Source: Hypanus sabinus (taxonomy: Eukaryota). From it: a stretch of DNA of 64,000 nt. The notes below the pieces were generated by a model. The model worked only from the letters and a program-made list of their open reading frames with translations. It searched no databases and was not told the DNA's origin. The translations under genes and the position numbers were made by a program. Of the stretch, positions 46,352 through 55,270 are shown piece by piece. Every line of letters begins with the position of its first letter. Within the stretch, counting starts at the first letter, position 1. Location: NCBI RefSeq assembly GCF_030144855.1, contig NC_082707.1, forward strand, positions 55,800,001 through 55,864,000, in the 5' to 3' direction.

Positions 46352-48085
46352 AGTAAGATAATTTGACAAATGTGACTTAGGAATTGGTGCAGGGGGCAGG
46401 ATTCAGATTTCTGGATCATTGGGATCTCTTCAGGTGGAAGGTATGACCTGTATGAAAAGGACCTGAACCCAAAAGGGAACCAACATCCTGCAGGCAGGTT
46501 TGCTGGAGGGGTTGGGGAGGGTTTAAACTAATTTTCCAAAGGGAGGGTGAGAACCAGAATGATAGGACCGAGGATAGGACAGTTGATATACAGAAAAGGC
46601 AGATGATAGGGCAAAATTGCATTCAGTGGGATGAGTTGAAATGTAACATGAGGGCAAAATCAAAAAGGATGATGAATACAGGTGTTATATTTGAATGCAC
46701 ACTGTATATGGAACAAGGTAGATGATCTTGTAGCCCAGTTAAAGATTGGCAATTATGACATTGTGGGCATCGCTGAGTCATGGCTGAAAGATCATAGTTG
46801 GGAGCTTAACATCCAAGGATACACAGTATATCAAAAGGACAGGTATGTAAGCAGAAGGGATGGGGTGGCTCTGTTGGTTAAAAAAAAATTAAATCCTTAG
46901 AAAGAGGTGATATAGGATTTGAAGATGTAGAATCCTTATGGGTATACATAGTTAAGAAGTTTCAAGAGTGAAAAAAGACCCTGATGGAATTATATACAGG
47001 CCTCCAAATAGTAGCCAAGATGTGGGATACAAATTACAGTGAAAGAAAGAAAAAAAATGTAAGAAGTGCAATGTTACTATAGTGATGGGGTATTTCAATA
47101 TGTAGGTAGATTAGGAAAATCGGCTTTGTGCTACATCCCGAGGTGGATTTTGCAGAATGCCTGTGAGATGGCTTTTTAGAGCAGCTTGTGGTTGAACTCA
47201 TTGGGGGAAAGGCAATTCTGGATGTGGTGTTGTGTAATGAACAAGATTTGATTAGGGAGCTTAAGGTAAAGGAACCCTTATGAGACAGTGATCTTGACAT
47301 GAGAGCATTCACTCTGCATTTTGAGAGGGTGAGATAAAGTTTGATGTATCAGTATCACAGTGGAGGAAAAGGAATTATTGGAGTGTATGGGATGGCCAGG
47401 GAGGGGTAGCTCCTCTGGTGAAGAGACTTGTTGTTTCCATTCCAGAGTAACTCACTCACCTTTGGTCCCCAGTGGACACTCAGTTCTCACCTGGAGCTCC
47501 AAATAACTCTTTACATGTGAAAGTTGCCACACCCCAGTACATTGCTTTGACAGGCGGGCTAAACCAGGCACGGCCTCACACCCCGTGTCCTACCATGGAA
47601 AGTCAGCTCTGGCAGACTGGTTGGATGAGAGCTCTAGTGAGATCTAATGGCCACAAGGGCAGTACTGTAATACTCCAATGAGAGCGAAGGGCATGACAAG
47701 GCACAGAAGATGTCATGGTCATTCAATGCAACCAATGCAAACTCCAGTTTGTGACACTAGTTCGTACCACTGAACATGGACTTCTGAAGTTGAAAGAATG
47801 GAACTGCCCCAGTGCAACTTTAAAAGCTCTCCATTATAATTTTCCTACTATGGGCGTGTCCAAGGTTGACAAATCTGTTGGAATTCTTTGAAGAAATAAC
47901 TGACAGGATAGACAATGGAGAGTCATTAGTTGTTGTGTACTTGGGTTTTCAGAAGGCTTTTGACAAGATGCCACGCATGAGGCTGCTTAACAAGATAAGA
48001 GCCCATGGTATTACAGGAAAGTTACTGGTATGGATAGGAGATTGGTTGACATGCAAGAGGCAAAGAGCAGGAATAAATGGTTGAC
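46352..48085 (+). mobile_element. CR1 LINE (ORF1 end, APE endonuclease, RT fragment)
   Basis: LYLNA...DIVGIAESWL...GVALLVK; TNLLEFFEE...FQKAFDK. Confidence 0.85.
47380..47830 (+). mobile_element. RTE 5'UTR-derived fragment or non-autonomous element with a decayed HDV-like ribozyme, nested in CR1
   Basis: Colinear with the RTE 5'UTR: GGAGTGTA...GACACTCAGTTCTCACCTG...GCCACACCCC...GGGCTAAACCAGG. Confidence 0.75.
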
Positions 48086-48972: not shown

Positions 48973-49123
48973 TATATAAATAAATAAAATTAGAATAGCC
49001 AAAAAAAAAAGAAAAAGTAGAGAGATAGCACATATGAGTGCTGAATGAGTCCATTCAGAAATCTGATGGTGTTGGGGAAGTAGTTGTTCCTAAAGTAGTA
49101 AGTGTGTTTCTTCAGGCTCCTGT

Positions 49124-52100
49124 TGTTGTGGGTCCGGAGGTGACTGGTGAGGCCAATCCGGGCCCTGAAAGCTCGCCCACATGTGGGACACGAGGGTAGG
49201 TGCTGCAGTGGAAGTGGAGGTAGTTTGAGCCTTGCGTGAGGCGCGTTTCCTCTGAGCCTCAGTGGTGCGTCTGATTTCTGCTGCATACGCTCCTTTAGTG
49301 GTCCTGCTCCACCAGGTTGGGCGGTCCAGAGCAAGCGATTCCCAGTTACTGAGATTGATGTTGAGGTCTTTAAGGGTCACTTTGAGGCAGTCTTTGAAAC
49401 GTTTCTTCTGCCCCCAACTGAGCACTTGCCCTGGCTCAGCTCTCCATTCAGCAGCTGTTTTGGTAGTCGACTGTCAGACATCCTGATGACATGGCCAGCC
49501 CATCTGGCTTGGGCTTTCTGTAGGAGGGTGTAGATGTAGGGTGCTAGCCTGCTCCAGGACCTCCTGCCATCGTACGTGGAGAAGTCTGCGGAGGCAGCTC
49601 AAGTGGAAGTGGTTGAGCTGTTTAGCGTGTCTGCTGTAGACAGTCCAGGTCTCGCTGGCATAGAGGAGGGTGGTGAGAACCACTGCTCGGTAGACCTTCA
49701 GCTTGGTGGTAAGGCTGAGTCCTCTCTGCTCCCTTACATTCTCACGGAGTCTCCCAAAGGCGGCACTGGCTTTGGCAATTCTGTTGCTGCTCTCTGCATC
49801 TATGTTCACCGCCCATGATAGAGTACTGCCCAGATAAGTAAAGCTGTCGACTTCCAGTAGCTTCTGTGCCTTTACTGTGATGTGTGGTTCCTGGTAGGGC
49901 TTTCTGGGTGCGGGCTGGTACATAACTTCGGTCTTTTTGGTGCTGAATGTAAGTCCGAAGTTGTCACAGGCTCGTGAGAGGCAGTCCATTTCTCGCTGCA
50001 TCTTCTGCTCTGTGCTGACGTTGAGGGCGTAATCATCAGCAAATAAGAGGTCTCTGACGACGGTCTCCTTTACCTTTGTAACAGCCTGTAGACGCCGGAG
50101 GTTGAATAGCCCACCGCCAGTCCTGTATCTGAGGTGTATAACATCCTGACAGTCGTGGAAGGCATCATTCAGCATAGCAGAGAAGACCATGCTAAAGAGT
50201 GTAGGGCGAGAACGCATCCTTGATTCACACCGTTCATCACTGGGAAGGCTTCTGACTCATCACCATCATGCCATCGTGGAACTGCCGAACAATCGTGGAA
50301 ATGTCGACAGTTCCACGCCCTGCACGGAAGCCACACTGGCTTTCTGGAAGGAGACCTTGCTCAAGGTGTTGGAGAAGGCGATTAAGCAGGATGCGAGCCA
50401 AGATCTTCCCAGCTATGGACAGCAGGGAGGTGCCTCGGTGATTGTCACAAGACTGGAGGTTGCCTTTCCTCTTGTAGATGTGGACCATACTGGCATCCTT
50501 CAACTGTTGTGGGACCTTTCCTTCTTTCCACATAGACTGGAAGAGCTCAGTCAGCTTCTGCATCATAAATGGGCCTCCTGCTTTGTAGACTTCAACAGGG
50601 ATTGCATCTGATCCTGGTGCTTTGCTACAAAGTTGTCTGATGGCTTTTCTGACTTCTTCTGTGGGGAGGTTGTCAAGGTCCAGGTTGATCTCCACCTGAG
50701 GTAGCCGAGCAATGGCCTCATTATTGATTTTGGCAGAGCAGTTGAGGACCTTGTTGAAGTGTTCAGCCCACCTCTCCAAAATCTGCTTTTTCTTTGTCAG
50801 CAGCCGAGTCCCATCTGCACTGAGGAGGGGGGGAGGAGCCAGAGGACTGAGGTCCACACATAGCCTTCAAAGCGTCGTAGAAACGCTTGGTGTCATGACT
50901 GTCTGCATACCCCTGGATCTCATCGGCCTTATTGCTGAACCAGACATCCTGCATCTCATGGAGTTTCTTCTGTACTTTCCGTCTTGCACTGGCGAAGGCA
51001 TCTATCTTTGCTTGTGATGTGGGATCGTTCTGGTGCGCTCTGAACAGTTGGTGTTTCTCTGACAACAGTGCCTGTATCTCCTCGTCGTTCTCATCAAACC
51101 AGTCTTGATGTCTACGGATTACTGGTCGGAGGTGTTCGAGAGTGGTAGAGTAGACTGCATCTCTGAAAGTCGTCCACTGCTCTTCAGTGCTGGTGTGGTC
51201 ATCCTTGGGTGTGTCAAGCAGCCTGCTATCTAGGTCTTCACAAAATTCTTCTGCAACTACACTGCTTTTCAGCTTGGAGACATTGAGCCTCTTTGCAGTC
51301 TTCTGACCTTGGGGTCTTCTCACAAGCAGGATGCGAAGTTTAAACTTGGACACTATGAGTCGATGATCCGTCCAGCAGTCGGCACCACACATGGCCTTTG
51401 TCACTCTCACGTCTTGCCAGGCCCTCTTTCTGGTGACGACATAGTCAATCAGATGCCAGTGCCTAGAGCGTGGATGCATCCAAGATGTCTTGTTACGGGT
51501 AGGGAGGCGGAATAGGGTGTTTGTGATGACAAGGTCATGCGTAGCGCATGTCTTGAGGAGCAGCAGGCCATTGCTGTTACACTTGCCAATACCATAACTT
51601 CCAAGAATCCCTTCCCAGGTCTGGTAATCTGTCCTCACTCTGGCGTTAAAGTCCCCGAGGACAGTAAGCTTCTCTGGCTGGAGGGCATCAAGTTCTTCAT
51701 AGGACTTTGATGTCATCTGGGTTGGTCATTGTTGGGACATATGCACTGATCAGCGTTGTACTCCTCTTTGCCAAGTGGGAGCCGAAGCATCATCAGGCGA
51801 TCGTTGATGCCCTCTGGAAGCTTGGCAAGTTTACGAGCGAGGTGGGATCGGATGGCAAATCCAACACCAGCCTCTCGTTGTTCAGTGCTGCTGCGACCGC
51901 TCCAGAAGAATGTGTACCCACCACCATGTTCTGTAAGCTGGCCCTTGTCTGCTAGGTGTGTTTCGCTGAGTGCTGCAATGTCCACGTTATAGCGGGCTAG
52001 TTCTTTGGCGACCAGTGCTGTTCTTCTTTCTGGTCTGACAGCCTTGGTGATGTCAAGCAGAGTTCGCACGTTCCACATGCTAAGGTTGAGCACCTTCACT

Positions 52101-52940
52101 TTTGTTTTCTTTGTAGTTTGACTGCTGAGTGGGATCTCCGCCAGCCGTGGTGTGCTGGCCAGGGTAAGATGAAGCAGGCTATGTTTGAAGCACCTTTTCT
52201 AGCCCCGTCCTCCTTGGAGGTAAGCAGAGCAATTCCTAAAGAGGACTGCTCAGACACCCGGGGGCTGCTGAGCTCCACTGCTGCTTCATTCCAGCGCAGA
52301 ATGACCCAATGCCCTGGGCCACCTGTGTGCAGGTTTGTGACTACAGCTTCCATTGTATCCACACCTGCTGCTTCGCCACTCGCCCATCGCCACAGGACTT
52401 GAAGTTTTTTAGCGGAATGGGTTTGGAGTCGTGACTTGCGCTTGACTTGGATGAAACTGAGGGAGAGTTGCGCAAATCGTCAGCCTCACTCTCTCATCTC
52501 GACCTATCTGTATCCAGTTGCAAGACGGAGTTGAGACGGCTGGAGATAAGTCGGGATGCAGTGGATGGCCAGCAGTGTCCTATGTGTCTCACTGTGCCCT
52601 GATTGCGCTCCACAACGCTTTGCTGGGTCTGCCTTTTTACTCGTTGGACCGCCAAGTGGTTGATCTCCTCCGCGTAGTCCGCCGAATTCAGTCTTCGCAT
52701 GCGTTGGTAGACAAGCCCTAACTCACTGAGGGTTTGAGACCCAACAGCTACCCTCACCAGGTTTTGCCGGCCGGTCGAAGCTGTTGCCCGGGGTGTGGCC
52801 GCTGTTGCATGCAAACAGCTACGAGGAACCACTGGTGAGAGCTGAGTGTCAGGTGAGGACTAATGCAGACGAACTACTCAGAAGAGTACGACGTGTTCCC
52901 CATCAGTGTTACTACCTCTCCCTGACGCCTCGTACACCCC
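49124..52940 (-). mobile_element. RTE-clade non-LTR retrotransposon, 5'-complete, frameshifted and internally deleted
   Basis: APE endonuclease (WNVRTL, IAALSET, GDFNA, LIDYV, TDH), RT (LLFADD, YLGS), C-terminal CPTCGRAFRARIGLTSHLRTH. Perfect 12-bp TSD TCAGGCTCCTGT at 49112-49123 and 52941-52952. Confidence 0.95.
52751..52940 (-). ncRNA. HDV-like self-cleaving ribozyme at the RTE 5' end, with a hairpin inserted in L3
   Basis: P1 GGGGUGU/ACACCCC, P2 CUCUCACCAGU/AC(C)UGGUGAGGG, P3 GGU/GCC, L3 UCCUCG, P1.1 CC/GG, GGGCAAC...GGCAAA core; G1 abuts the TSD. Confidence 0.8.
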
Positions 52941-53500
52941 TCAGGCTCCTGTAGCTCCTCCTTGATGGTAGCATTGAGAAGAGGGGCTGTCCTGGGTGAT
53001 AGGGGTCCTTTAGAGGCAACCCCTTTTGAAAGTGTCCTTGATACTGGTGATGCTAGTGCCCATAATGGAGCTAGCTAAGTTCACAACTTCCTGCAGCCTT
53101 GTCTGATCCTCTGCAGTGCCCCTCCCCAATACCAGATGGTGATGCACAGTGAACACAGTACATTTGTAGAAATTTGCAAGTGTCTTTGGTGACATGTCAA
53201 GTCTCCTCAAACTCCAAATGAAATTTAGCAAATGTCATGCCGCCTTTGTAATTGCATTAGTATGTTAGGCCCAGGATAGATCTTCAGAGATTTTGACACC
53301 CAGGAACTTGAAACTGTTTACCCTTTCCACTACTGATCCCTCGATGAGGATTGGTGTGTGTTCCCTCGACTTACCCTTCCACAGTCAATTCCTTGGTCTT
53401 ACTAATTTTGAGTACAAAGTTGTTGTTTTGGCAGCACTCAACCAGCCGATCTACCTCACTCCTGTATGCCTCCTTGTCACCATCTGAAATTCTGCCAACA
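52941..53500 (-). mobile_element. Rex1/Babar LINE remnant hosting the RTE (continues at 48975-49123)
   Basis: MSPKTLANFYKCT...LQEVV; RSLK...FRNNYFP on the far side of the RTE. Confidence 0.75.
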
Positions 53501-54532
53501 ATGATTTACAGGTTGTGTTTGAACTGGCATCCACCGATTCTGCTTGGAGGTTGGAGTACTTCAGTTTACAGAATTAAGTCTACTTCAAGTATTGACTGTT
53601 TTATCTCCATGTTTAATCATTCAGTTTCCTTAATGTAAGCCTTTATGTCTGTCAATGTACAGAACCTTGGTTTACTCTTTGTCCTTATATAAACAGCTTT
53701 CGCTGCTCTTCAGATCTCTTCCCATACCTAATTCTAATCGTCTAACATCCATCTTTGAAAATCTAGCAGTTGTCATCATGGTACATTTTTGTGTTATTTC
53801 CCTCATTAAAAATCATTGTTGCTTAAGATTCCATTCTCAGCAGATGCAAACATATTCAGGTAATACCGTAAAACACAGGAACAGTATTAGGCCATTTGGC
53901 TCATCAAGTCTGTTTTGCCATTCAATTTAGTTTCCCTCTCAAATACTTTCAACTGTCTTCTCCCCAGAACCTAATCAAAAATATATCAACGACTGCCCTT
54001 AAATATTCCCAATGACTTGGCCACCTCAGCTGTCTGTCAAAGTCCACAGGTCTACTTTTATAAAATCCCTTCCTAACTATGAGGATATGTTATCGGTACA
54101 TCTCTAGCAGTGGCTTGGCGCCCTTCCTTCACATTATCATCTTTTCCCTATCATTGTACTTTCATGTTCAGCTTTCCAACATGTTTCAAATAGCAAAAAA
54201 AATGCATATTGTGGAAATACTAAAAAAAACAAAAAAATGCTTGAAATACTCACTAACCAGGCAACATCAGTAGAAAGAGAAAATTAACTAATGTTTCAGA
54301 TTTCACTTTCCAACAGAATTGCGAGAATTTAAAAATCAAACTTATTCAGGTTGCAGGGGAGGAGGAAATATGAAATGAACAATAGGAATGGTATGATAGG
54401 GTGGGAACAAAGACTATCCTCTCTTATCAGATTCCTTCCTCTGCAGCCCTTTACCTTTCCTATCCACTTGGCTTCACGTATCACTTTCTAGCTACCCTCT
54501 TCCCCCCGCCCCAACCTTTTTATTCTGTCGAC

Positions 54533-55270
54533 TTAAGACCATAAGGTAGAGAAGCAGAATTTGGCCATTAGCTCATCAAGTCTGCTCTGCCATTTCATCA
54601 TGGCTGATCCAATTTTCCTCAGCCCCAATCTTCTGCCTTCTCTCCATATCCCTTCATACCCTGATCAATCAAAAATCTATCAACCTCTTCATCAAATATG
54701 CATAAAACTTAGGTCTCCACAGCTGCCTGTGGCAAACAATTCCACAGACTCACTTCTCTCTGGCAAAAGAAATTCCTCCTCATCTCCATTCTAAAAGGAT
54801 ACCCCTCTATTCTGAGGCTGTGTCCTTTGGTCTTAGACTCTCCTACCAAAGGGTACATCTTCTCCACATCCACTCTATCAAGGCCTTTCACCATTTGATG
54901 GGTTTCAATGAGGTCACCCCTCATTTTTCTGAATTCCACTGAATTCAGGCCCAGAGCCATTAAATGCTCTCCGCATGGCAAGTCATTCAATCCTGGAATC
55001 ATTTTTATGAACTTCTTTTGAACCCTCTAGAGTTTCAACACATCCTTTCTAAGATAAAGGCCCCAAACTACTTACAATGCTCCAAGTGAGGCCTCACCAG
55101 TGCTTTATAAAATCTCAACATTACATCCTTGCTTTTGTATTCTAGTCCTCTTGAAATGAATGCTAACATTGCATTTGCCTTCCTCACCACAGACTCAATC
55201 TGTAAATGAACCTTTAGGGAATCCTGCACCAGGACTCCCAAGTCTTTTTGAACCATAGGTTTTTGTATTT
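54533..55270 (-). mobile_element. CR1 LINE 3' fragment
   Basis: QKDLGVLV...KANAMLAFISRGLEYKS...VRPHLE. Confidence 0.9.

Follow-up and report, generated by a model that had tools for sequence, protein, structure and literature searches.

A candidate hepatitis delta virus-like ribozyme with a conserved hairpin in loop L3 at the 5′ end of an RTE-type retrotransposon in Hypanus sabinus

What sets the first base of a retrotransposon that lacks long terminal repeats (a non-LTR retrotransposon)? The question is posed by a dead RTE-type element in a 64,000-nt stretch of the Hypanus sabinus genome (contig NC_082707.1, forward-strand positions 55,800,001–55,864,000; this whole stretch is referred to as the window, and its first base is position 1). 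The element lies on the minus strand and starts at position 52940. Its first 190 nt probably encode a self-cleaving ribozyme of the hepatitis delta virus (HDV) type, a reading to which we assign a probability of roughly 0.78 on sequence grounds. The candidate ribozyme carries a hairpin in the catalytic loop L3 and a structured domain of about 90 nt in the junction J1/2. Such a double pseudoknot at an RTE-type start had been proposed in an earlier sequence-only reading of the window, and homologous copies with the same architecture now support it.

The fold fills the 190-nt segment completely. Its strands follow in the order P1 5′, P2 5′, P3 5′, L3, P3 3′, P1 3′, P1.1, P4, J4/2 and P2 3′, just as in the double pseudoknot of HDV. 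The helices P1, P2, P3 and P1.1, the loop L3 with its insert, the GCAAC segment and C52766 were all found where the sequence-only reading had placed them. The segments are as follows.

52934–52940, minus strand: 5′ strand of P1, GGGGUGU; the cut is predicted 5′ of G52940, and the heptamer is invariant.
52842–52933, minus strand: J1/2 domain of 92 nt, closed by GUCAGG/CCUGAC and containing inner helices.
52831–52841, minus strand: 5′ strand of P2, CUCUCACCAGU, forming 11 pairs with the 3′ strand.
52828–52830, minus strand: 5′ strand of P3, GGU; GGC in most related contigs.
52821–52827, minus strand: L3 core UCCUCGU, assigned from its sequence and from the invariance of its U, CC and G in contigs.
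52800–52820, minus strand: L3 insert of 21 nt, A-GCUGUU-UGCAUGC-AACAGC-G, a 6-bp hairpin flanked by A and G.
52797–52799, minus strand: 3′ strand of P3, GCC, pairing with 52830–52828.
52790–52796, minus strand: 3′ strand of P1, ACACCCC, forming seven Watson–Crick pairs with GGGGUGU.
52788–52789, minus strand: 3′ strand of P1.1, GG, pairing with C52826 and C52825.
52783–52787, minus strand: J1.1/4, GCAAC; relatives have UAAAC, UACAC or GCCAC.
52769–52782, minus strand: P4, AGCU/GGCC with the 6-nt loop UCGACC; the stem pairs 52782–52779 with 52772–52769.
52763–52768, minus strand: J4/2, GGCAAA, with the equivalent of HDV C75 at 52766, followed by AAA.
52751–52762, minus strand: 3′ strand of P2, ACCUGGUGAGGG, with C52761 bulged.

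The departure from the usual form lies in L3. In the insert, 52819–52814 pair with 52806–52801 around a loop at 52813–52807, and the interval between the two P3 strands reaches 28 nt owing to these 21 additional nucleotides. HDV-like ribozymes are mostly sought with descriptors and covariance models in which L3 is short and fixed, about 7–8 nt in published descriptors, and the L3 of the window copy is longer than this. The J1/2 domain, earlier estimated at about 90 nt within the GUCAGG/CCUGAC closure, contains five helices according to RNAalifold, several of which show compensatory changes. P4 had been called weak, but it is a conserved 4-bp stem with a 6-nt loop; in the window copy, the first pair is an A.C mismatch at a position where approximately 90% of related contigs have G. 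U52828 of P3 is replaced by C in 82–94% of the contig depth. The core of the ribozyme is intact in the window copy despite the broken reading frames of the element. Taken alone, this copy has a minimum-free-energy fold that does not reach significance (z = −1.6), an expected outcome for a pseudoknot.

The 5′ boundary of the element is defined by evidence that does not involve the fold. The element and its target-site duplication (TSD) are located as follows.

49124–52940 (49124 approximate), minus strand: RTE-type non-LTR element, dead copy, recognized by pieces of its open reading frame (ORF), Pfam matches, tail and TSD.
52941–52952, minus strand: 5′ copy of the TSD, ACAGGAGCCTGA, identical at 12 of 12 positions to 49123–49112.
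49112–49123, minus strand: 3′ copy of the TSD, whose leading ACA possibly belongs to the CAA tail.

At the 5′ junction the minus strand reads tga and then, from 52940, GGGGTGTACGAGG... At the 3′ end the element finishes with CAACAACAA, followed by ACAGGAGCCTGA at 49123–49112; the tail is (CAA)n, with (CAA)3 adjoining the TSD. The element is nested in the 3′ coding tail of another long interspersed nuclear element (LINE), and the joined flanks read through the insertion site as ...RSYRSLK followed by KHTYYFRNNYFPNTIRFLN. In other organisms, RNA contigs have loose ends at 52941, where the host repeat runs on uninterrupted. The RNA and DNA runs consulted here consist of assembled contigs, in which neither read starts nor 5′-OH ends at 52940 are visible. 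Because the TSD, the intact host repeat and the loose ends of the RNA contigs agree, the first base of the element is G52940, fixed without recourse to any fold. The cut site predicted from the fold coincides exactly with this base, as the sequence-only reading had anticipated from the TSD.

The host LINE itself can be translated across the insertion (52941–53100 and approximately 49000–49111, minus strand) as ...KDTFKRGCL.KDPYHPGQPLFSMLPSRRSYRSLK followed by KHTYYFRNNYFPNTIRFLN. This repeat is hugely abundant in the contigs of RNA runs, reaching a summed depth in the thousands in three of four organisms.

The fold could in principle arise by chance, since the lengths of J1/2, L3 and P4 were left free. 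A relaxed descriptor, which allowed an L3 insert of up to 40 nt, a J1/2 of up to 150 nt and a P2 of at least 8 bp, matched the real window once, at the ribozyme site, and matched 400 simulated 64-kb windows three times. This rate, approximately 0.0075 per window, corresponds to many matches per genome. A genome-wide scan would therefore find the fold alone by chance, and it is the match with the element boundary and the conservation in relatives that carry the argument. Both run counter to a chance resemblance: the fold starts exactly on an independently fixed boundary, and homologous copies in unrelated genomes conserve it with covariation. A loose 24-base pattern, searched against 596 Gb of prokaryotic DNA, likewise returned only five matches, all plainly non-homologous and GC-rich. 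Accordingly, we consider a chance origin scarcely credible. The loose pattern had no match in viral contigs; in metagenome contigs it picked up two true copies together with three GC-rich chance matches. A tRNA origin of the region was excluded.

Relatives were recovered through an accidental reading frame that runs across the ribozyme (52494–52832). Its translation, used as a protein query, gave nine matches, and a profile then gave 84 clusters at 50% identity; all of the matches are translations of one RNA region (...TQLSPVAPRSCLHATAATPRATASTGRQNLVRVA...). The contigs of the matched proteins, along with the metagenome-contig pattern scan, supplied the DNA copies labelled L003, L004, L005, L006, L008, L011, L012–14, L015, L016 and L017. 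Eight of these are distinct relatives (L003, L004, L008, L011, L012, L015, L016 and L017), across which the segment lengths are constant save for the hairpin loop and J1/2. L015 comes from the cestode Schistocephalus solidus (GCA_900618435.1, UYSU01039127.1, 1422–1621), and the variant is also present on unassigned metagenome contigs. Since it heads an RTE-like family in S. solidus and occurs on these contigs, the vertebrate subclass that had been suggested was too narrow, and the family extends beyond vertebrates. At least seven S. solidus protein clusters contain the SWFFPAATPR translation, and the 5′ untranslated region (UTR) ahead of the apurinic/apyrimidinic endonuclease (APE) domain is much shorter in this family. 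In S. solidus, a parasite of fish and birds, the variant may stem either from horizontal transfer or from an old common ancestor.

The 5′ ends of most copies agree with the predicted cut. In seven of ten copies, the GGGGTGT heptamer is the start directly after an unrelated flank. L003 starts at a heptamer that aligns with a second unit and is intact in the L003 lineage; in most lineages, such a second, looser GGGGTGT-like unit lies 8–9 nt downstream of the first. The base preceding the heptamer is never G, an observation that is partly circular because a G at this position would be counted as part of the element. This absence agrees with the preference of HDV at position −1, U>C>A>G (PMC1874588). 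One to three tandem GGGGTGT-like units of 8–9 nt were seen in the window copy, L006:1576–1600, L017:140–170, L008:4941–4960 and L016:1386–1405, the first unit being the most conserved. These units may stem from terminal re-copying during reverse transcription or may provide alternative registers of P1. The arrangement would suit a 5′ end determined by the heptamer that happens to pair with ACACCCC, combined with some re-copying of the terminus by the reverse transcriptase (RT).

Covariation was assessed in a core alignment of 10 sequences (P2, P3, P1.1, L3 hairpin and P4) and in an extended alignment of 11 sequences that included P1 and J1/2. In the core alignment, 93.4% of the cells form pairs, compared with 30–50% when the partners are slid, and seven pairs are changed on both sides, a number reached in none of 500 shuffles. 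When P1 and the J1/2 helices predicted by RNAalifold are included, 92.3% of the cells pair and 20 double-sided changes are present. The covarying pairs of the core comprise two in P2, two in P4 and three to four in the L3 hairpin, while the J1/2 helices also show compensation. In P2, the A-U pair 52833/52759 is replaced by U-A in seven of the ten core sequences, and the adjoining G-C becomes A-U in L011. The P4 stems are GGCU/GGCC in L003 and L017, CGCU/GGCG in L008, CGCG/CGCG in L011 and CGCC/GGCG in L015; thus, the first pair in relatives is G-C or C-G, and the fourth is U.G, G-C or C-G.

The L3 insert is present in every relative. Its stem is GCUGUU/AACAGC in the window and L003, GCUGUC/GACAGC in L004, GUUGU/ACAGC in L008, GUUGC/GCAAC in L011, GCUGG/CCAGC with the loop UUCUUC in L015, and GCUGU/ACAGC with a 9-nt loop in L017. 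As judged from these alignments, the conserved insert is a hairpin of 5–6 bp at the 3′ end of L3.

The unpaired residues of the core were examined in contigs of four other organisms, aligned at 80% likeness, in which the summed depth over the core reaches approximately 30,000. No variant at or above 8% occurs in these four organisms at C52766, G52822, U52827, C52826, C52825 or 52791–52799, the last interval covering the 3′ strand of P1 without its CpG cytosine 52790, together with the 3′ strand of P3. The neighbouring positions 52765, 52764, 52824, 52823 and 52821 vary by 17–90% in at least one organism, with 52765 reaching 73% and 52764 reaching 53%. The remaining low-frequency changes are mostly CpG transitions. 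Among the window copy and its intact relatives, the L3 core reads UCCUCGU, UCCCCGA, UCCACGA, UCCAAGA or UCCUCGA, which reduces to U-C-C-N-N-G-N, and J4/2 reads G-C-(A/U/G)-(A/G)-A-A, with the C present in all intact copies. In HDV, the G25A change, which affects the U20.G25 pair, costs approximately 3000-fold in activity, C75 is catalytic, and A77 and A78 anchor C75 (PMC1874588). As far as the sequences allow the comparison, the invariant set matches the residues of the HDV catalytic core, including C21 and C22 of P1.1. A mere structural element is not expected to keep exactly these unpaired bases.

The same data bear on whether the hairpin variant could be the inactivated descendant of a once-active ribozyme that spread by other means. 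The insert does sit in the catalytic loop, and many copies, including that of the window, are decayed. In contrast, the hairpin occurs in all recovered lineages with compensatory changes, the core is invariant in very many copies from four organisms, and the lineages with intact frames of approximately 1000 aa (L003, and L005 with its downstream 1076-aa gene) bear the hairpin. The compensation in the hairpin and the invariance of the core indicate that selection acted on the insert-bearing form. Inactivation is therefore very improbable.

Several results weigh against the ribozyme reading. A search of Rfam with positions 50000–55000 on both strands, at E-values up to 10, returned no match to an HDV-type family (HDV, CPEB3, drz-Agam and related) or to another ribozyme family; the expectation that existing models would miss the ribozyme was thereby borne out. 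To our knowledge, no HDV-like ribozyme with an L3 as long as 28 nt is known. The alignments consist of only 10–11 sequences, three of which are decayed. Covariation had been proposed as a check on P1, P2 and P3, and the compensatory changes found in P2 have no counterpart in P1 or P3. These two helices and P1.1 are invariant or changed on one side only; in intact copies, P1 is altered only in L004 and L016, where the C facing G1 is replaced by U and a G.U wobble results. Because P1, P3 and P1.1 never covary, the pseudoknots depend on complementarity and invariance. All of the covariation lies in helices (P2, the hairpin, P4 and J1/2) that a pseudoknot-free fold would also contain. RNAalifold moreover proposes a nested pairing of GUGGCU with GGCCAC, which extends into the hairpin and is in competition with P1 and P2. 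Finally, in L006 and L017 the heptamer is preceded by an additional GGGTGT unit, in which the first G is missing.

The lack of an Rfam match, the nested pairing and the distribution of the covariation would all suit a conserved non-catalytic module of the 5′ UTR, such as a protein-binding site or a translation-initiation structure, whose likeness to HDV is partial convergence. In this module, P2, P4 and an extended P3 with the hairpin would meet at a three-way junction, and the 5′ end would result from an internal promoter or from full-length reverse transcription. The likely start codon of a first frame (ORF1) at 52706, 45 nt downstream, fits this explanation, as does the internal ribosome entry site-like action proposed for HDV-like folds (PMC6765202). 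A module of this kind leaves three features unexplained: the invariant unpaired HDV set (U-C-C..G of L3 and C-N-A-A of J4/2) amid freely varying neighbours, the perfect complementarity of the 5′-terminal 7 nt to the strand following P3 in all intact copies, and the GG after the 3′ strand of P1, which matches the CC of L3. For these reasons, we regard the non-catalytic module as unlikely and favor the self-cleaving ribozyme.

A self-cleaving ribozyme suggests the following mechanism. The element would be transcribed within longer host transcripts, and the ribozyme would cut just 5′ of G52940 by means of C52766 in J4/2 and a metal ion at the U.G pair of L3. The freed element RNA would begin with GGGGUGU and carry a 5′-OH. 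Since the released RNA would start at this heptamer, we propose that a full-length reverse-transcribed copy begins at the same base.

The remaining parts of the element are consistent with its assignment. The element is 3.8 kb long and contains a single APE+RT frame, broken by frameshifts into consecutive minus-strand ORF pieces; Exo_endo_phos and RVT_1 are the Pfam matches on the successive pieces. The closest named relatives of its APE are annotated as 'craniofacial development protein 2-like'. A single APE+RT frame, a compact size and, at the 3′ terminus, short tandem repeats rather than poly(A) are all traits of the RTE group. The size, the microsatellite-like tail and the relatives of the APE thus fit a placement of the element with this group. 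A C2H2-like motif, CPTCGRAFRARIGLTSHLRTH (49090–49425, minus strand), closes the frame at the 3′ end of the element (49090–49200), before (CAA)n; a Pfam search found no match for this motif at the C-terminus. The AUG at 52706 opens a frame within 52494–52706 on the minus strand, and a peptide of the form M-R-R-L-N-S-A-D-Y-A-E-E...V-Q-R-x-x-R-x-Q-Q-x-V-E recurs in many clusters at 50% identity (proteins P0127, P0130, P0131, P0138 and P0152). An element of Diadema shares 70% DNA identity with the window element, starting at element position 380. The recurrent peptide and the Diadema alignment suggest that a short ORF1 precedes the APE+RT frame.

Not every related element carries the module. Covariance model R1 found no ribozyme in the relatives identified through the APE, L001 (Diadema) and L002 (an ENA contig), which align with the window element only from element positions 380 and 545 onward, respectively. 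Judging from these alignments, both are either 5′-truncated or headed by another 5′ UTR. In L002, a look-alike that combines TCCTCG with a hairpin was rejected after manual fitting to the fold failed. At L002:3380–3510, two RTE-like copies lie head to tail with an AT-rich, (ATTATT)n-like tail between them, and the downstream copy gave no match to the ribozyme model.

The window itself contains a second module.

47380–47574, plus strand: copy B, a second, decayed ribozyme module, with 70% identity and a score of 77.6 bits with covariance model R1.

In copy B, L3 reads UCCAAAU, P1.1 has AG in place of GG, and P2 no longer has its outer portion. It resembles a subfamily that is far commoner in the contigs of other organisms (L3 UCCAA-, P2 with U-A), and no RTE reading frames were found downstream of it. 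Copy B is probably a non-autonomous RTE-derived element, as far as its sequence indicates. In four other organisms, the contig depth over the core is 10–50 times that over the J1/2 of the window copy. This far greater depth, together with the ORF-less copy B, agrees with the existence of ORF-less RTE-derived elements that bear the ribozyme.

These observations raise the possibility, which we hold tentatively and at slightly less than even odds, that HDV-like ribozymes with an L3 hairpin form a large, active and undescribed subclass. Its members would lie at the head of RTE-type LINEs, and of non-autonomous elements derived from them, in animals far apart: in the genome of the window and in related genomes, in a cestode, and in eukaryotes that are unassigned and marine or host-associated. 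Length-capped descriptors and Rfam models would miss them systematically. Like catalysis, a role for the hairpin is inferred; the hairpin may have a function of its own, such as docking an element protein or timing the fold. A large family probably escapes standard ribozyme searches. No structured insert in L3 was found in the searchable literature or in Rfam, a search that did not extend to Ruminski 2011 and Webb 2009; its novelty is probable, not proven.

In this family, whose copies are very numerous in several genomes, a conserved helix is inserted in an L3 that is normally short and fixed. If the variant cleaves, the catalytic core is more tolerant than assumed, and ribozyme-processed retrotransposons have been undercounted. 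The L3 hairpin would then constitute a natural test of the active-site scaffold of L3 and P1.1 in the presence of an extra domain, and cleavage would explain the defined 5′ ends of promoter-less RTE elements and of their short derivatives.

Four known systems are close to the candidate. According to PMC3774820 and PMC6765202, which cite Ruminski 2011, HDV-like ribozymes are established at the 5′ ends of RTE, R2, R4/Dong, Baggins and L1Tc elements, with cleavage at the first base in RTE, R2, R4 and L1Tc. The window copy shares with these ribozymes the extreme 5′ position on an APE+RT element, the predicted cut at the first base, the nested double pseudoknot, the U/CC/G of L3, the C-N-A-A of J4/2 and a frame that opens shortly downstream. 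It differs in its L3, which has 28 nt as against 7–8 nt and forms a hairpin before the 3′ strand of P3. With the genomic HDV ribozyme (RF00094), it has the L3 sequence UCCUCG and the segment GGGCAAC in common, an identity that the sequence-only reading had recognized, as well as a 7-bp P1 starting from G1. U20, C21, C22 and G25 of the HDV L3 correspond to the U, CC and G of the window. The first pair of HDV is a G.U wobble, as in two relatives, and the AA following the catalytic C can form the A-minor anchor. Differences from HDV are the structured J1/2 of 92 nt, the 4-bp P4, the L3 hairpin and the bulged 11-bp P2. Large J1/2 domains of the drz-Agam-2 type speed cleavage by pinching P1 and P2 together (PMC4908430), and the window copy resembles them in its long J1/2, closed by a helix beside P1 and P2. 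In that type, the extra domain occurs only in J1/2 (and P4), whereas the window copy also has a helix in the catalytic loop. The nearest precedent for this helix is the R2 ribozyme of the jewel wasp Nasonia, which still cleaves with an unusual spacing of the conserved L3 nucleotides (PMC3774820); the change of spacing is small there, whereas a structured insert is present in the window.

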